Made by a program: the position numbers and the translations under genes. This document shows positions 3,439 to 63,290 of a stretch of 64,000 nucleotides of DNA, in pieces. The notes under the pieces were generated by a model. It did not search any database, was not told the DNA's origin, and saw only the letters and a list, made by a program, of their open reading frames with translations. Location: the sequence record NC_021531.1; one strand, written 5' to 3'. Every line of letters starts with the position of its first letter. Positions within the stretch are counted from its first letter, which is position 1.

Positions 3439-3462
3439 ATGGAATGGCCGTCTAGACTGATA

Positions 3463-3490
3463 TTTTTTACAGTTGACCCGTTTGATATAG
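3463..3490 (+). promoter_or_regulatory. putative phage (middle-type) promoter
   Basis: TTTTTTACA-N12-GATATAG, followed by AAGGAG SD and GTG at 3508. Confidence 0.6.
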
Positions 3491-3507
3491 TGGAAAGGAG
3501 AGATTTC

Positions 3508-3885
3508 GTGAATAAGAACTTTTTTGACTACTTGAGGGCGGGTGAGTTTCCTTGTGAGGTCACCTACGACGGAGGCAAATATAAAACGTTTATCGCGTTC
3601 ATTACCACGACTCCCTACTTCAAGAGTTTCATCGATGAATTTACCGCTGTAGAAGAATGCATCAACTTTGAATTACCGCATACCTTGACCTGTCCGTCCG
3701 CACTGACAGTCGCCGATGTTAAAACCATGATGAAAAATTCAGACCACATGGACTACCTGTTGCGGCATCTGGTTGATAAGTTGCTCCGTGCAGAGGATTC
3801 GTATGAGTCAATCTTCGCGGCGTTGTTTGACTATTACTACATGGTTCGGAACTACACCCAGATACCATTAGACACCGTACACTAA
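3508..3885 (+). CDS. hypothetical protein
   Basis: ORF; start moved to GTG 3508 because of AAGGAG SD and upstream promoter motif. Confidence 0.65.
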   Translation: MNKNFFDYLRAGEFPCEVTYDGGKYKTFIAFITTTPYFKSFIDEFTAVEECINFELPHTLTCPSALTVADVKTMMKNSDHMDYLLRHLVDKLLRAEDSYESIFAALFDYYYMVRNYTQIPLDTVH

Positions 3886-13119: not shown

Positions 13120-13361
13120 GGACGAACCCGCGTCATTCCTAGAAAGTGGTTTTTTGGAGTGTTCATTTTAACTCTTATTATATGCAACTTCCCTTCACGG
13201 GGGAGGGGCCTACGGGGGAGGGGGTAATATGTATATATATGGAGATAATTTAGTAATAGTAAATTGATCTATTAATTTAATAAATAATTAGGTTATTAAC
13301 TTAGTAGATCAGATCCGTAGTAAGTAACTAAGATCGATCTAAACTTAAAAAAGAAAAGTAA
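13120..13361. other. non-coding G-quadruplex plus AT-rich GATC-rich region; candidate replication origin
   Basis: G5-A-G4-CCTAC-G5-A-G5 at 13199-13224, very AT-rich tract, five GATC in 13266-13339. Confidence 0.45.
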
Positions 13362-13389
13362 ACCTACCTACCCTAATGGGTAGGTAGGT
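13362..13389 (-). terminator. intrinsic terminator of minus-strand gene
   Basis: ACCTACCTACCC-TAAT-GGGTAGGTAGGT with A tract on plus side. Confidence 0.85.
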
Positions 13390-13391
13390 AG

Positions 13392-14453
13392 TTATGATCC
13401 GATCACTGCATTCAGCTTACTGAATACGTTCTGATCCAAAGTGAGTTTTACTGAGGAAGGTAAACGTTCAGTGAACCGTAACTGGAAGAAGTTCCTTAAC
13501 TCTCTAACCAGTGTTGGGTAGTAACGGGCCATAGCTGGGTTATCGTAGTTTACCACATACGCCATAAAGTTCAGGTTCACCAGTTGGTAGAACCAGCGCT
13601 GTTGGTTTGTACGGGAATACGATTCATCTGCCAGTAACCCTAACGCACTCGGTTTCCCATTGAAATACATGAGGAGGTGGTTCATTACCACACCGGGGAG
13701 CGGACTACCGGATAACAGTCGCTCACGGATAACCTTTGCATTACGGTCTACGAGTGGTGCGAGCATTGGGATAGGATAGTCTCTGAAGTCATCATCCTTT
13801 TCGATAGCTACACCGTTGGCCAAGAACCGATGACGGTTGAATACCGCTAAGTCCATGTACGTAGGGAGCATACGGTAAACGACATACCGCCAGAGGAAGG
13901 TCTGCAGATTTATCCCACCGTGGTTTTTGTTACGCTGGTAATATTTGTAGGCTTGGAAGTATTGCCAAACCAGAGCAACCAGATTAATTTCAATATAGCT
14001 AATACCGCGTCCACCGTTCTTCGTACCCATCTGCCAGTTCAGATTGGTGTAGTCGTGGAACAGGTAGCGGGCAGGCTGTAGTTCTCGCCACGGGGTATTC
14101 GGGTCGATGTGTTCAATAGAGATAGCGATTAACTCCGCTTGTCCCTGAATGAACTCACCTACATGGATTTCTCCAGGGTGACTGGGAGAGACTAAACGCA
14201 TGGCTGCGCCGATGTTGATGAACTTACGTCGGCACGCCCAGTATATGTCGTCGTACGTGGCGTCGGGTTGAAAGCCGATAGCCGAGAGGATACGCACCAG
14301 TAGGTGTTCGGATTTCACTCGGTTCTGCAGGCCCTCTACACGGTTACGAATACGTCTCTGATTATTTTTTACAACAGATGCAATAGTTATGGACGTAGGG
14401 TCAACGTTATGTGACTTTATGATGCTCTGCTGGATATCCGCGTTACTGAACAT
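13392..14453 (-). CDS. conserved phiKZ-like virion/head protein divergent from chimallin
   Basis: 353-aa ORF, AGGAG SD, AGTATG late-type motif upstream; product from synteny. Confidence 0.6.
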   Translation of the reverse strand: MFSNADIQQSIIKSHNVDPTSITIASVVKNNQRRIRNRVEGLQNRVKSEHLLVRILSAIGFQPDATYDDIYWACRRKFINIGAAMRLVSPSHPGEIHVGEFIQGQAELIAISIEHIDPNTPWRELQPARYLFHDYTNLNWQMGTKNGGRGISYIEINLVALVWQYFQAYKYYQRNKNHGGINLQTFLWRYVVYRMLPTYMDLAVFNRHRFLANGVAIEKDDDFRDYPIPMLAPLVDRNAKVIRERLLSGSPLPGVVMNHLLMYFNGKPSALGLLADESYSRTNQQRWFYQLVNLNFMAYVVNYDNPAMARYYPTLVRELRNFFQLRFTERLPSSVKLTLDQNVFSKLNAVIGS

Positions 14454-14500
14454 GTGGAAGTCTCCTAAGGGTGGTCATACTATCCCACCGCGTTACTCTA

Positions 14501-14529
14501 AAAAATTACAGATAGATTTTATTGTATTG
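14501..14529 (+). promoter_or_regulatory. putative middle-type promoter upstream of chimallin
   Basis: AAAAATTACA-N12-TGTATTG; resembles phiKZ middle motif AAanntTAC. Confidence 0.5.
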
Positions 14530-14656
14530 AACCAGAGCGCTTAAAACCGTTCTACGTGTTTGAGTAATGTTATTGAAAGATTATTCAAACATATTTTATT
14601 CCCGTGAGTTAACTCAAAGTAATCATTTCAATCTCTATAAACAGGAAATAAATACC

Positions 14657-16438
14657 ATGGTAGAATTCTACGACGAAAACAAAAACTCCAACACTTCTAA
14701 AGACTCTAACGCTGCTACTGGCAACGTTCAGGGCTTTTCTGTTGGTACCGCTGCCGAAATGAACATGGCCTTTGAGTGGAGCTCCGTCAACTCTCAGGCT
14801 GGTAAGTTCGTCGAGCTGATTAAAGAAGCGGCGAAAGAGAACAAGTATCTGGCCAACTTCCAGGTCGGTACTGTTGATGCGGTAACCGGTGAATTCGGTT
14901 CTGCGGCTTACGTCGCTGGTGAACTGCGTGGCATCCCGCTGTTCGGTATCGTGTTCTTCGAGAAGGGCCTGTCCCTGCGTCTGGTGGTAAACAACAATCA
15001 GGAAGATTACTACTCTATCGCTTCCCTGATTAACAAAGACGTTATCGCCACTGTTGCGAAAACGCTGAAAACCACCCACAGCCTGTCTCAGGACCCGCGC
15101 TTCATTTCCATCAACACCATCCCGGATCTGGATATCGCCCTGACCCGTGAGCGTGCTCTGTCCATCATGGGCCAGATGATGACCAGCATCTTCGGTCGTG
15201 CTTCTGGCTATCTGGGCAAACTGGTCGTCACCAAAAACGACAAGTTCATCGCACAGGTTGGCAGTATCGGTGAAGGCGCAGTGCTGGACGTAAACGGTCA
15301 CGCACAGCGTGCTGACTTCGGTATCAAACTGTCTCACGTGCCGATGCAGCAGAACACTGCACCGACTCTGATGTCCGGTACCAACGCTCAGCAGTATCCG
15401 AACTGCGCCGCAGCTGGTTACGCTAACCTGCGTTACACCGGTATCGTGAAGAACGCTGACGGTTCCATGAAAGACCGCCGTCAGATTTCTCCTGAGCTGG
15501 TTGTGAGCCTGATGGACTCCTCTACCCTGACTGCGAACGCACCGTTCGAACGTCAGCTTCTGATGCTGGGTGTTGCGGCTAAAACTGCAGCGCTGGGCGG
15601 CTGGATGGAATTCATCAAGAACTCTCTGGACGGTAAGACTCGTAAAATCTCTGCGCTGGCGCAGAACTGCAACTGGGGTGCAGACGTGTCTAACACCGAC
15701 TGGAAAGCGATGGACAAATCTGCAGAAGCGGCTGAACGCTTCCTGCGTGAGTTCTGCTACGAAACCGCTGGTCTGGTAGTTGAGCACCGTGCTGGTAACG
15801 GTATCGGTGGTCTGATTGGTCTGCTGTCCGAAGTGGCACAGAACAAACCTCAGGCGCTGGAAACCCTGCTGGCTCTGCTGGACAACATGTTCCCGGCTGT
15901 AGACAATCTGAAGTTCTCCGATGGTCTGCGTCAGGCATTCGGCGGTAACGTTACACTGAACGCGTCTCACATCGTGTCTGGTGTTGTTCCGACCGTAGCC
16001 GGTGTTTACCGTGGTTCTAACGGCCTGCGTTCATACTCCGATATGGACCTGCTGCGCACCACTACCCACCTGGGTGACGACCGTGCCGAAGTGCTGAAAT
16101 ACTTCCGTGCTCAGTCCTACAAACACCGTAACATGTCTCCGAAACAGCAGCGTATCTATCTGGCGCAGCTGGCTAACAGCATGTTCTCTGGCAACGATCC
16201 GATTCCGACCGGTGAAGCTGTTCAGATTTCCATCAACCCCACTTTCGCTAAGTTCCTGTACGAAGCGATTGATGCACACGGCCTGTTGCAGCTGACTGGC
16301 GTTAACGCTGTGTCTGTTGCGGATTCCGTACCGTTCTACAACAACACTGGCGAACTGTTCGTAATGTCTGGTGTTGGTGGCGTGTCTACCAACAGCGCGT
16401 TCGACTTCGCTCAGCAGTCTGGCTATTTCAGCATGTAA
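14657..16438 (+). CDS. chmA: chimallin, phage nuclear shell protein (phiKZ gp54-like)
   Basis: ~593 aa from ATG 14657 (AGGA SD); lies between DNA polymerase and RNAP beta' gene; motifs DVNGHAQRADF, AAGYANLRY, SDMDLL and TGEAVQISINP resemble known chimallins; strongly biased high-expression codons. Confidence 0.9.
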   Translation: MVEFYDENKNSNTSKDSNAATGNVQGFSVGTAAEMNMAFEWSSVNSQAGKFVELIKEAAKENKYLANFQVGTVDAVTGEFGSAAYVAGELRGIPLFGIVFFEKGLSLRLVVNNNQEDYYSIASLINKDVIATVAKTLKTTHSLSQDPRFISINTIPDLDIALTRERALSIMGQMMTSIFGRASGYLGKLVVTKNDKFIAQVGSIGEGAVLDVNGHAQRADFGIKLSHVPMQQNTAPTLMSGTNAQQYPNCAAAGYANLRYTGIVKNADGSMKDRRQISPELVVSLMDSSTLTANAPFERQLLMLGVAAKTAALGGWMEFIKNSLDGKTRKISALAQNCNWGADVSNTDWKAMDKSAEAAERFLREFCYETAGLVVEHRAGNGIGGLIGLLSEVAQNKPQALETLLALLDNMFPAVDNLKFSDGLRQAFGGNVTLNASHIVSGVVPTVAGVYRGSNGLRSYSDMDLLRTTTHLGDDRAEVLKYFRAQSYKHRNMSPKQQRIYLAQLANSMFSGNDPIPTGEAVQISINPTFAKFLYEAIDAHGLLQLTGVNAVSVADSVPFYNNTGELFVMSGVGGVSTNSAFDFAQQSGYFSM

Positions 16439-60579: not shown

Positions 60580-61852
60580 AGCGATTGTAGGCAAACACAT
60601 CGCAAAAGCCGTCGGTAGTCCAAAGCTTACGTACACTGTGGTTTTGAAAGCAAACGGAATTGCGGTCAAAGCCATGAAAGTGCACTCCATTACCCGACGT
60701 TCGGAATTCGTTCGCACGATGGGTACCACCACGTTCATCACAATCCTTGTTCCAATGACGCAGTTGCGTCTGTTGCTGTCAAAGACCTACGGGAACCTGA
60801 CGTGTACGCTCGGCACGTTCTCGCAAGGCAAGCTGTTACGTCGTGAGGTGTTGTACGGTGTGGTTCAAAACGCACAAGACCTTGACATGACCGCGCCGAC
60901 AAAGAACATGGGTCTTGGTGATGAAATCGATTTCTCGGTGGTCACACTGGAGTTGATGAACGAGGCTATCTGGAAACTGCGATTGGTGCAGCAGGGTCTT
61001 AACGTGCAGCGTAACGACCCGTTAACGGTATGTCGATTTCTCTTAGCACGTACGACGAGGGCACAGGATGCACAGAAGGGCGAGACGGAAGGGTTACAGT
61101 ATGCTGAGGAGCCGCAGACGCCATATTCATCGATTGTGGTTCCTGACGGCACCCCATTCCGCGGTATCTTCGATTACCTCCAAAACCGATACGGTGTGTA
61201 TGCCCAAGGGTTGGGCGTGTTCAACTATGAAGATGTGTGGTTTCTCTTTAGACCGTGGAATAAAGCCCGGTTTCAGGAAGACGACTATCGGTTGGTTGTC
61301 TACGCTGTAGCGGCCGATGACATGGCACAGCCTGACCACACGTTCCGTATCGAAGGGAAGACGTATTACGTCGTTGTAGCGGGCGATAATCGCCTCGTCG
61401 ACCAGCGTGACCAGTCAGCCCTTAATGAGGGCACAGGATACCGTGTAGCCTCTGTGCGTGCGTTAGATGGCCGTACTATCGACCAGACCGAGAACGGGCC
61501 CACACAGACCGTCTCAGACGCGTTTGTAAGCACCGCTAACCCGTCACCGCATAACTCTGGGTTAACCAATGCTAACTTCGGCGAGAAACGCTTTGCAGAC
61601 AGCGATAAAGCGATACGTAGCGAGCTTGCTCGAAAAGCAGGTCGTTATCTGACCGTACGCTGGTCACACGCAATGTTTGGGGCAGTACGTCCGGGTATGG
61701 GTGTGCAGTACAACTATGCCAACGACGGTGGTATGTTCACCAAACACGGGACGGTTATTGGGGAAGTCTACCACACGGCATTAGACGGTGGGGGTGCTGC
61801 TGGCGAACAGTACGTTTCGTCATCAGACATCATGCTCTGGATTGCTGACTGA
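60563..61852 (+). CDS. baseplate hub-type protein (phiKZ gp101-like)
   Basis: Start 60563; GIFDYLQNRYGVY pattern; synteny. Confidence 0.6.
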   Translation: MFARFKAIVGKHIAKAVGSPKLTYTVVLKANGIAVKAMKVHSITRRSEFVRTMGTTTFITILVPMTQLRLLLSKTYGNLTCTLGTFSQGKLLRREVLYGVVQNAQDLDMTAPTKNMGLGDEIDFSVVTLELMNEAIWKLRLVQQGLNVQRNDPLTVCRFLLARTTRAQDAQKGETEGLQYAEEPQTPYSSIVVPDGTPFRGIFDYLQNRYGVYAQGLGVFNYEDVWFLFRPWNKARFQEDDYRLVVYAVAADDMAQPDHTFRIEGKTYYVVVAGDNRLVDQRDQSALNEGTGYRVASVRALDGRTIDQTENGPTQTVSDAFVSTANPSPHNSGLTNANFGEKRFADSDKAIRSELARKAGRYLTVRWSHAMFGAVRPGMGVQYNYANDGGMFTKHGTVIGEVYHTALDGGGAAGEQYVSSSDIMLWIAD

Positions 61853-61880
61853 TTTTTTACAACTGAAAGATTAGATATAG
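61853..61880 (+). promoter_or_regulatory. putative middle-type promoter with no ORF before the next terminator
   Basis: TTTTTTACA-N12-GATATAG. Confidence 0.6.
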
Positions 61881-62030
61881 GCAGCCAGGGGATACCTGAG
61901 TTGGGGAGGGGGTTTTTTAACGAGTGATGAGCGTAGCGAATCACGACTTCCTTATTCCTAAGTAATCCTCTCTAAGGATTACGCTCAGTAAGTGTGCTCT
62001 CCCTTCGGGGAGAGTCCTTATTTTTCTTTT
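61881..62030 (+). ncRNA. candidate small structured non-coding RNA / primer RNA
   Basis: Bounded by promoter motif and terminator; internal hairpins; no SD-led ORF. Confidence 0.4.
61997..62030 (+). terminator. intrinsic terminator
   Basis: CTCTCCC-TTCG-GGGAGAG plus T-rich tract. Confidence 0.8.
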
Positions 62031-62084
62031 ACGTCATTTTCTAATCCTATGCTAACAAACACCTCTTTAACAAGGAATTATTCG

Positions 62085-62828
62085 ATGAACGAAATTATCC
62101 GTTACATGCTCTCCGCCGATGTCATTCTGAAGATTGACGAATACGAGAAAGCAACGTTCGGTAAAAAAGCCACCAAGCTCTGGGACCGTATCATCAAAGT
62201 CCTGCCGCACGGTGAGCAGATTGAAATTCTGGGTGTGCAGGCAACCAACCGCGATACCACCATTGCTATCCTCTATAAAGTCGATGGCGTGGAAGGCGGT
62301 AAAAACCTGCCTATCGCTGACGAAGGTTCACTGGGCAACCTGCTGTTCATGCACTGCGTAGCGTTTGCTACCCCGTACCAGATTTTGCATACGCTGTATA
62401 GCTTCGACTATATCTACGCGATTGCAAACATCATCTCGGGCCGTATTAAGCCGGGCGACTCCGACACTTATCCGCAATACGTTAAGCGTATCCGTCCGGA
62501 AGACTTCGACGACGAAGTTTCGCTGGATGTGTTCCGCTTTGAGCTGATTGGTGAAAACCGCACCGACGACTTCGTGACCTACCTGAAAGCGATCGTGCGC
62601 TACCATGCGCAGATGTCGACTGACGATATGTCCAACAACCACAACGAGCTGTATCCGGTTCTGATGTACGGTAACCGTGTAGCCTTCGGTACGTACATTC
62701 CGTTCCCAGCCCGTATCCTCGCACCGTACCACGACAGCACTATCCTGCCCGAGCCGGAAGAGCTGGGTCTGTTGTTCAGTGATGCGGTCAATGTGATTAG
62801 CGAACAGCGTCACCATCTGCAGCATTAA
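62085..62828 (+). CDS. hypothetical protein
   Basis: AAGGA SD before ATG 62085; phage-typical codons. Confidence 0.8.
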   Translation: MNEIIRYMLSADVILKIDEYEKATFGKKATKLWDRIIKVLPHGEQIEILGVQATNRDTTIAILYKVDGVEGGKNLPIADEGSLGNLLFMHCVAFATPYQILHTLYSFDYIYAIANIISGRIKPGDSDTYPQYVKRIRPEDFDDEVSLDVFRFELIGENRTDDFVTYLKAIVRYHAQMSTDDMSNNHNELYPVLMYGNRVAFGTYIPFPARILAPYHDSTILPEPEELGLLFSDAVNVISEQRHHLQH

Positions 62829-62840
62829 AAATAAAGCCGA

Positions 62841-62880
62841 CTACTACCCTTCGGGGTAGTAGCGGTTATTTTCTTTTTTT
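62841..62880 (+). terminator. intrinsic terminator
   Basis: CTACTACCC-TTCG-GGGTAGTAG plus T tract. Confidence 0.85.
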
Positions 62881-62899
62881 CCTAACGAAAAATATTTCA

Positions 62900-62920
62900 G
62901 ATATATATTACTTTTGTGAA
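62900..62920 (+). promoter_or_regulatory. putative early promoter
   Basis: GATATATATTAC contains the phiKZ early motif TATATTAC. Confidence 0.65.
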
Positions 62921-62965
62921 CGAGATACATTATCTCTTAATCTAATACACTGTGGAGCTATTCAA

Positions 62966-63241
62966 ATGTCTATTATTCGTGTTCTGATTCATACCCTCGC
63001 TATTCTGGCTGTCGCTGTATTCTTCATCCTGTCTCCATTCGCAGTAATGGATTTGCTGGGTGGTCAAGAGAATGCAATCGTTGCTGGTTTAGGTGGCGCG
63101 CTTTACATCGTCACCGCTTTAGGTTTCCTCTTCAGCGATGCTTTAGAATTGAACTTCGGTCCATTCCGCTGGTACCGCAATCTCGTTGAAAAGAACCGTT
63201 ACGTGGCTCCAGTGTGGAACTACATCTTCGGCAACGAATAA
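62966..63241 (+). CDS. small membrane protein (two predicted TM helices)
   Basis: GGAG SD; two long hydrophobic stretches. Confidence 0.75.
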   Translation: MSIIRVLIHTLAILAVAVFFILSPFAVMDLLGGQENAIVAGLGGALYIVTALGFLFSDALELNFGPFRWYRNLVEKNRYVAPVWNYIFGNE

Positions 63242-63290
63242 CCCCAACTCTTAACTGACTCACAACAACTCATTTATAAGGAATACTATT

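Follow-up and report, generated by a model that had tools for sequence, protein, structure and literature searches.

The subject of this analysis is a 232-nt gap between genes CR5_062 and CR5_063 in the genome of Cronobacter phage CR5 (NC_021531; 223,989 bp; genus Derbicusvirus), a relative of SPN3US with split multisubunit RNA polymerase genes; this gap may well encode a discrete structured small RNA. The window analyzed consists of bases 1-64000 of this genome. Both flanking genes and all features described in this paragraph are on the plus strand; CR5_062, which encodes virion structural protein 7, ends at 61852, and CR5_063, which encodes a hypothetical protein, starts at 62085. The gap opens with the promoter TTTTTTAC-N12-AGATATAG (61853-61880; second box GATATAG), which belongs to a recurrent motif class and has its predicted start near G61880. 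It is followed by a 5′ hairpin, named P0/H1, which is present in the minimum free energy fold (CAGCCAGG-GGAUA-CCUG(A)GUUG; 61882-61903), and by the double G-run GGGGAGGGGG (61903-61912), which starts 23 nt past the predicted transcription start and runs into TTTTTT (61913-61918). Further downstream are hairpin Y (GTGATGAGC-GTA-GCGAATCAC; 61924-61944), which as RNA reads GUGAU-GA-GC-GUA-GC-GA-AUCAC and contains the tandem G·A pairs of a "GA-zipper", the pyrimidine tract GACUUCCUUAUUCCU (61945-61959), hairpin H4 (61962-61982), in which GTAATCCT (61962-61969) faces AGGATTAC (61975-61982) and the stem arms are GUAAUCCU and AGGAUUAC, and the short hairpin H5 (GCUCA/UGUGC; 61983-61997). The unit is closed by an intrinsic terminator with a GC-rich stem, a UUCG loop, and a U-rich tail (61996-62030), and CR5_063 has its own promoter, TTTTAC-N15-CTATG (62024-62051). 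The features listed in a preliminary description of this DNA, including the G4AG5-T6 tract, the GA-zipper hairpin, the second hairpin, and the UUCG terminator, were all found at the positions given there by direct reading of the sequence, and the terminator was called independently by a terminator scan.

In the predicted terminator (stem, 61996-62015), eight pairs, including five G-C pairs, enclose a loop of 4 nt, and a T-rich tail follows, as is typical of intrinsic terminators. The same terminator also closes the upstream CR5_059-062 operon, and there is none between the stop codon of CR5_062 and position 61996, which means that late transcripts must run through the element. The RNA from 61880 to 62030 folds with a predicted energy of -53.3 kcal/mol (z = -2.3), and its GC content is 0.47 over 61881-62030 and 0.40 over 61913-61960, with 0.50 for the window.

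Conservation, coding potential and covariation

The gap aligns end to end with its counterparts in Phobos, EarlPhillipIV, Derbicus, and pEa_SNUABM_38 at 83% identity (mean column identity 89%), which is above the 77% identity of a comparison stretch made up mainly of flanking genes. In a sliding comparison the local identity reached its maximum, 0.8-0.92, at 61910-62050. Across the five genomes TTTTTTAC and TTAGATATA are unchanged, the pyrimidine tract differs by one U/C change only, and the terminator stem is unchanged, with UUCG or UCCG as its loop. The preliminary description had named conservation in relatives as a check on its small RNA; among the five Derbicusvirus genomes the gap is more conserved than the flanking genes and contains compensatory pairs.

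The data on coding potential agree with the earlier statement that no open reading frame (ORF) led by a Shine-Dalgarno sequence is present. No frame of the three orthologues has a stop-free stretch longer than 51 codons, and no ORF is conserved among them. The only short frame, of 12 codons (ATG 61927 to TAA 61965), loses its start in the Derbicus group, where ATG is replaced by ACG, and its substitutions are all nonsynonymous or tied to stem compensation. That the stretch codes for a peptide of 12-13 residues (ATG 61927 or GTG 61924 to TAA 61965), with the G-rich tract as a Shine-Dalgarno sequence, is hardly credible. All three lineages retain this frame with its stop codon, and GGAGG lies upstream of the frame; however, GGAGG is 14-17 nt away from the start, the ATG and much of the frame are gapped in the alignment of the paralogous elements, and the changes fall where stems compensate. 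The micro-ORF was rejected because its start is lost in the Derbicus group and because there are no synonymous-only changes.

To assess the structure, a model of six helices with 40 pairs was scored, which consisted of the 5′ hairpin, a helix between the G-runs and the pyrimidine tract, hairpin Y, H4, H5, and the terminator. In three distinct sequences 96.7% of the cells were paired, and 7 pairs were double-changed, as compared to 0-1 in controls with slid partners. In the 5′ hairpin pairs 8-20 and 3-25 (numbering of alignment A2) changed from C-G to U-A and from C-G to A-U, respectively. Two pairs were double-changed in hairpin Y among Derbicusvirus orthologues and two in H4, in which all cells were paired, and the H5 pair 108-116 (alignment A2) is C-G, A-U, and U-A in the three lineages. 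The compensatory changes in helices located 3′ of the G/T tract suggest that the full-length RNA is under selection. The CTGAG/CTCAG closing stem suggested previously is at best tentative; with 87% of cells paired and one double change it did no better than shuffles, and it clashes with two better-supported hairpins. The pairing of the pyrimidine tract with the G-runs, denoted as helix P1, is compatible with the data rather than demonstrated by them. The predicted duplex energies ranged from -7 to -15 kcal/mol in 16 out of 16 sequences, but shuffled tracts scored about equally; 83% of P1 cells were paired, and only one pair covaried.

A paralogue and a family of related elements

In SPN3US, Wellington, Asesino, and Machina only 37-44 nt, without a terminator, separate the homologues of the flanking genes. 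The joint absence of the promoter, the RNA, and the terminator from these four relatives suggests that they arrived together in the Derbicusvirus lineage. A paralogue, which was first spotted among other sites of the promoter class, is located at CR5 154,545-154,680 (L013:4545-4680) between a baseplate assembly gene on the minus strand and CR5_165. When the genome was searched by nhmmer with a profile of the three 61.9-kb orthologues, this copy scored with E = 5.9e-4, and no other match was below E = 2. It has the same promoter, GGGGAGAGGGGG 23 nt past the predicted start, and also CTTTTAA, GAGCGTAGCGA, and CGACATCCTTATTC. The paralogue is kept in Derbicus and Phobos, its core of ∼50 nt is unchanged in the three aligned lineages, and an early promoter intervenes downstream of it. 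In IMG/VR a pattern scan matched CR5, Phobos, and Derbicus alone, with exactly two copies per genome, and scans with the exact motif found only these three Derbicusvirus genomes. A lone metagenome match (L009) was discarded as an unrelated chance match.

Huxley (Machinavirus) and SPFM17 (Seoulvirus) have a recognizably homologous element in the intergenic region at the syntenic position. A search for the locus with the N-terminus of the baseplate protein gave 15 element-bearing loci, including those of ChrisDB, SPN3US, Huxley, Caitlin, phiEaH2, and seven uncultured contigs, and a search for the locus with a single protein matched CR5 alone. A looser pattern built on hairpin Y returned mostly noise; among the matches listed, two contigs were real after filtering for upstream G-runs, and these were L064, which was new, and L135, the element of which is identical in sequence to that of L042. 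Homologues at the syntenic, 154.6-kb-type site are present in five named phages of other genera and in eight uncultured contigs. A phiKZ-like phage and an Agricanvirus lack the element; the gap at the corresponding place is only 64-73 nt long in them. On these comparisons, the 61.9-kb copy is apparently a duplicate, specific to Derbicusvirus, of an older promoter-proximal element found in nucleus-forming phages of the SPN3US type. This family is previously undescribed.

The members of the family share a common plan, in which a TTTTTAC promoter is followed by a hairpin with a GAAA, GAGA, GAUA, or GGAUA loop, the double G-run G4-6 N1-4 G4-6, an optional hairpin X, the sequences CGGAGG...CCGAC around hairpin Y with its tandem G·A pairs, and the motif CGAC-N-YCCUU(U)AUUC. 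The last motif, which corresponds to the pyrimidine tract of the 61.9-kb copy, is the most conserved one and is present in every member. The homologue of CR5 hairpin Y in the relatives is the CGGAGG...CCGAC hairpin, and in nine of these relatives 5 of its 8 pairs covary, with 91% of cells paired. In relatives with a promoter located by the scan the double G-run lies 43-50 nt after TTTTTAC, and the G-runs are present in all rows of alignment A7. In at least 17 family members G is never replaced by A, even opposite U, which indicates a constraint beyond pairing and hints at a role specific to the G-runs. The T-run after the G-tract is found in Derbicusvirus only, and in SPN3US, Huxley, ChrisDB, Caitlin, and the uncultured contigs L037-L042 a hairpin stands in its place. 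The downstream genes differ from phage to phage and are mutually unrelated, which suggests that the element is not tied to one gene. It continues into the ribosome-binding site that follows in some members; in others, for example in Machinavirus, a new promoter comes next. Separately, it was observed that phiEaH2-type members, and several uncultured ones, carry a tandem duplicate of the GAC-N-UCCUUAUUC module (L044:736-849; L037:531-654, minus strand). Its second copy is preceded by AAGGAACG(U/C)AGU, a sequence similar to what runs from GCGUAGCGA to CGACUUCCUUAUUCC in the 61.9-kb copy of CR5.

The promoter class and neighboring signals

The preliminary description had called the promoter of the unit a perfect middle-type promoter. 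The recurrence of the motif is clear, because TTTTTAC-N10-15-(TATAG/TATG/TATAT) has 14 copies in the CR5 genome, as compared to 1.1 ± 1.05 expected from Markov-1 simulations. An iterated position weight matrix (PWM) identified 22 sites with the consensus TTTTTTACaac-N-TATaG, nearly all of them located just 5′ of genes, and the site at 61855 ranked fifth. These sites precede both DNA polymerase genes and the genes for a DnaB-like helicase, DprA, an SMC protein, and an endonuclease, as well as many small genes. The box TTTTTTAC is located ∼20-27 nt 5′ of the G in TATAG/TATG. The published middle motif of phiKZ is a TAC(T) box centered near -22, after a homopolymer run, and the 61.9-kb promoter resembles it in its TAC box, in the preceding homopolymer run, and in having sites before replication genes. 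A class of early boxes, TCAGATATATATTAC-N4-GTGA, was also found separately, at 62904, 88188, 154701, and 223930 in CR5, and it recurs in SPN3US, Wellington, Machina, and Asesino; it fits the published rule that the early promoters of these phages are AT-rich boxes that can be found bioinformatically. Thus the traits of a phiKZ-type middle promoter, which are the TAC box, the homopolymer run, the placement before non-early genes, and a separate early box, could all be recognized. The designation of the promoter as middle, putatively read by the non-virion RNA polymerase, is a reasonable label, given because of the genes that the motif precedes and the analogy to phiKZ, and to this extent the earlier wording is qualified.

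The promoter of CR5_063 is a weaker, conserved member of the same PWM class (62027), and its equivalent in SPN3US is ATTTAC-N13-GTATG in a 43-nt gap. At two other places the promoter class has a bearing on gene annotation. A site at 3465-3495 falls inside CR5_006, the annotated start of which is at 3439 (window 3439-3530), and GGAAAGGAGAGATTTCGTG directly after this site suggests that the true start is the GTG near 3510. The second-best site of the class (14367), 290 nt before CR5_023 (window 14367-14657), overlaps CR5_022 at the 5′ end of this minus-strand gene, an arrangement that would imply a long leader or an antisense transcript.

Several features were also observed downstream of CR5_063. 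A two-way terminator hairpin, CTACTACCC-TTCG-GGGTAGTAG, is located between CR5_063 and CR5_064 (window 62841-62863) and was called on both strands. The early box 5′ of CR5_064, TTTCAGATATATATTAC-N4-GTGA (window 62880-62925), is near-identical in SPN3US, Wellington, Machina, Asesino, and Photobacterium phage PDCC-1, and it also lies near 2450-2490 in L016-L019. A conserved block, CGCTTAGAACGCGTTACAGAGCGT in form, was seen in SPN3US-like relatives ∼40-60 nt upstream of the early promoter, in the ∼240-nt gap after the CR5_063 homologue (L016:2395-2430, L017:2400-2440, L018:2405-2445, and L019:2398-2430). The CR5_064 stretch itself (window 62954-63254) is present in Derbicus and has no counterpart in Phobos, where the alignment has a gap, and thus its presence differs within the genus.

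G-run loci at 13.2 kb and 223.7 kb

The preliminary description had paired the 61.9-kb element with a locus at 13.2 kb, because the G4AG5 unit is present in both. This 10-mer has two occurrences in the 224-kb genome, no more, and both of them are on the plus strand (13215 and 61903); as ∼0.4 would be expected, this is only mildly unusual. Double G-runs in general are not enriched in the genome (16 as compared to 23 ± 5). The 13.2-kb locus, G5AG4-CCTAC-G5AG5 (13199-13224, plus strand), is part of a 70-nt block, TATTATATGCAAC...G5AG4-CCTAC-G5AG5-TAATATGTATATATA (window 13150-13392), which is unchanged in CR5, Derbicus, and Phobos. Its four G-runs with loops of 1, 5, and 1 nt form a textbook quadruplex motif, and the block is followed by ∼130 nt with a GC content of 0.21 (13225-13360) and short GATC-rich repeats, and then by the terminator hairpin of the minus-strand gene CR5_022. 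The first G-run can pair with the upstream sequence CUUCCCU, and a 12-codon ORF begins 4 nt after the last one. The exact motif of this locus was found in IMG/VR in Derbicusvirus only.

The 13.2-kb locus is without hairpin Y and the pyrimidine motif, and the profile of the 61.9-kb element does not match it. With a profile of the non-Derbicus family members, the two true copies of the CR5 genome came first and this locus third, with a nonsignificant E-value of 0.32, which is explained by the G-runs and AAUAUGUAUA, both common to the uncultured members. Hence, the identity of the G4AG5 units stands, and these shared sequences are all that connects the two loci, the true paralogue being the one at 154.6 kb. 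The link between the 61.9-kb and 13.2-kb loci thus appears thin, but not empty. Outside the window, at 223,707-223,930 (L014:23707-23930), there is a strong site of the promoter class followed by GGGGGGATCAAGGGGGG (G6-ATCAA-G6), by ∼130 nt of AT-rich sequence with GGATAAATTAGTTATTAGT, which is similar to GGAGATAATTTAGTAATAGT at 13.2 kb, and then by the early promoter at the genome end. Judged by its sequence, this locus is possibly another one of the 13.2-kb type.

Comparison with known RNAs

A search of Rfam 15, which includes riboswitches, ribozymes, 6S RNA, tmRNA, and known sRNAs, with 4 kb and two small windows gave best scores of 13-22 bits, as compared to thresholds of 37-115. ARAGORN detected no tRNA or tmRNA in the window, and blastn against 5426 E. 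coli genomes returned no match. Several likenesses were considered and rejected. The Derbicus copies resemble ribosomal RNA (rRNA) by eye, copy A through ACCUCCUUA and copy B through GUAGCGACAUCCUUGU, but this was not significant against the rrn operon. For mimicry of 16S helix 45 with the anti-Shine-Dalgarno sequence, p was 0.04-0.54 against the 3′ end of E. coli rrsH, and for mimicry of rRNA including 23S around position 1929 it was 0.26-0.99 against the whole rrnH operon. A hammerhead or box C/D k-turn, suggested by GUGAUGA...CGAA, was dismissed, since the core varies (GUGAUGA, GUAAUGA, or GUGACGA; GAA vs. GAG) and has no Rfam match. The first transcribed bases are reminiscent of a type I-F CRISPR repeat (TATAGGCAGC), but the 5′ arm of the repeat hairpin is missing, and the match is not kept in the Derbicus group.

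Discussion

The reading that we favor, with somewhat more than even confidence, is that the 61.9-kb region encodes a discrete structured non-coding RNA of ∼145 nt, which presents a conserved core and is a Derbicusvirus-specific duplicate of an older element. Its transcription, probably by the non-virion RNA polymerase, would start at a promoter of the replication phase ("middle") and end with release at the intrinsic terminator. The ancestral element of SPN3US-like phages would be the one that adjoins the baseplate assembly gene. The core shared by both, which comprises the 5′ hairpin, the double G-run, the tandem-G·A hairpin, and a CGAC-N-YCCUUAUUC tract able to fold back on the G-runs, could be offered to a phage or host factor, be it a protein or an RNA partner, and it would most likely act as an RNA, possibly in trans, rather than as the leader of one gene. 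The small RNA of the preliminary description is upheld by the recurrent promoter of its own, the terminator, the lack of a conserved ORF, the conservation above that of the flanking genes, the compensatory pairs, and the homologous family; an independent promoter and terminator, the absence of an ORF, and conservation are what the sequence of a trans-acting small RNA is expected to show. The same observations, together with the further promoter of CR5_063 that follows the terminator, argue that the element is not simply the 5′ untranslated region (UTR) of the gene at 62085, an outcome that had been named as counting against a small RNA.

Several points weigh against this reading. The promoter and both ends of the transcript are predicted ones, and the covariation in the six-helix model comes from only three distinct sequences, one per lineage, from which the model itself was drawn. 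Sequences complementary to the RNA occurred in the CR5 genome, as 10-mers, in about the chance number, and no base-pairing target or partner was found among them; GAATAAGGAA, present at three gene junctions (12713, 117213, and 203284), is a generic stop-plus-Shine-Dalgarno sequence. In SPN3US, phiEaH2, and some uncultured relatives the element continues straight into the ribosome-binding site of the downstream gene, in the manner of a 5′ leader, and the strict conservation of the G-runs exceeds what pairing alone explains.

The leader-like members raise the main alternative for the ancestral copy, namely a cis-acting leader that would affect its own transcript or the polymerase transcribing it, by attenuation, antitermination, mRNA stabilization, or control of the downstream ribosome-binding site, in a way similar to the put RNAs of phage HK022, with the 61.9-kb copy as an attenuated leader. 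We consider this unlikely overall, even though the element is always promoter-proximal, occurs as two paralogous copies per genome, and in several members has a G-run/pyrimidine helix followed by U-rich sequence that resembles a weak terminator. In SPN3US, phiEaH2, and several uncultured members, moreover, the pyrimidine tract lies 15-35 nt before the next start codon, with no promoter between them. However, a strong terminator and a fresh promoter part the element from CR5_063 at 61.9 kb, an early promoter intervenes at 154.6 kb, in Machinavirus members, too, the element is directly followed by a new promoter, and the downstream genes are unrelated. It is very unlikely that no RNA function is involved at all and that the conservation reflects DNA signals at an operon boundary, i.e., the terminator of CR5_059-062 with the adjacent promoters, or the 3′ UTR of CR5_062. 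The passage of late transcripts through the element, with no terminator before 61996, would agree with such an explanation. In contrast, the best-conserved part is the ∼100 nt between the promoter and the terminator, the compensatory changes fall within it, and the homologous elements elsewhere are not at operon boundaries.

The other alternative is that the element provides a replication primer. Transcription through the double G-run would leave an RNA-DNA hybrid or a hybrid G-quadruplex, Rhc, the polymerase-associated RNase H, would trim it to a primer, and replication would start at 61.9 and 154.6 kb, and perhaps at 13.2 and 223.7 kb. According to a published study, no primase can be recognized in chimalliviruses, whose polymerase complex includes an RNase H, and the authors of the study speculated that RNA-DNA hybrids may start replication. 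The same promoter class drives replication genes, the double G-run lies ∼16-24 nt past the predicted start in members with a located promoter and never decays to A opposite U, and the element holds its genomic position as the downstream genes change. The 13.2-kb locus, with four invariant G-runs and 130 nt at a GC content of 0.21, has an architecture typical of origins. On the other hand, at 61.9 kb, where the GC content is 0.47, there is no AT-rich unwinding region such as an R-loop origin of the T4 oriF/oriG type would need. The genome is not enriched in double G-runs. The cumulative GC skew only follows gene orientation, being featureless at 61.9 kb and turning near 154 kb where the gene direction switches, and as a sign of origins it is uninformative. 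The T-run needed for likeness to conserved sequence block II (CSB II) of mitochondria is specific to one lineage. The helices 3′ of the G-tract are kept by compensation, a strong terminator would free the RNA, and the complementary pyrimidine tract would compete with the hybrid. The primer RNA with a CSB-II-like motif, as put forward in the preliminary description, thus becomes a minority possibility, and we regard it as rather improbable. A broader form of the proposal, which seems still more doubtful, is that the double-G-run elements behind middle promoters (61.9 and 154.6 kb, possibly 13.2 and 223.7 kb) are the replication start signals of primase-less phages, with the pyrimidine tract switching between a folded, released RNA and a hybridized primer.

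Almost nothing is known about the non-coding RNAs of nucleus-forming jumbo phages, and the RNA family described here spans several genera, is supported by covariation, keeps its place in the genome, has a promoter of a defined class, and includes a duplicate restricted to one lineage. If the discrete small RNA favored here is a regulator or a decoy, it would add a layer of RNA to the managing of a transcription compartment that is kept apart from ribosomes. If, instead, the G-runs mark hybrid-forming sites, the question of how primase-less phages start DNA synthesis would become directly testable, and the primer model is made topical by the published absence of a primase and the RNase H of the polymerase complex.

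Relation to known systems

At mitochondrial CSB II, G-quadruplex-driven termination and primer formation take place downstream from the light-strand promoter. The CR5 element is similar to it in having two G-runs one or a few bases apart on the nontemplate strand shortly after a promoter, a layout also seen in the paralogue and in the relatives with a located promoter, and in Derbicusvirus a T-run follows the G-runs; furthermore, CSB II belongs to a host system without a dedicated primase for this step. In contrast to CSB II, no U/A tract after the G-runs is conserved across the phage family, and a pyrimidine tract, covarying hairpins, and a canonical terminator follow instead. The phage polymerase is also a multisubunit enzyme, and the phage element is known here from its sequence. 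T4 oriF and oriG and ColE1 RNA II are R-loop origins at which a promoter transcript serves as the primer. The CR5 locus shares with them a promoter of the replication phase, a G-rich transcript, and an RNase H in the replication machinery, and its transcript is predicted to be structured like RNA II of ColE1. It differs from them in that an AT-rich unwinding element is absent and in that the RNA would be only ∼145 nt long and end at a terminator.

The putL and putR sites of HK022 encode paired, promoter-proximal antiterminator RNAs, and CR5 resembles this phage in having two paralogous stem-loop RNA elements per genome close behind promoters. There is, however, no match to the put elements in sequence or structure, the polymerase is of another type, and the new promoter after the terminator would make antitermination pointless at 61.9 kb. 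In genomic layout there is an analogy to the non-coding RNAs of PA5oct and the candidate of phiKZ, each being a short non-coding unit from promoter to terminator in a large lytic phage. For phiKZ, predictions gave only one candidate, of 75 nt, which northern blotting failed to confirm. None of these RNAs is homologous to the CR5 RNA, which has no match in Rfam, and the CR5 RNA differs from them in being backed by a multi-genus family and by covariation.

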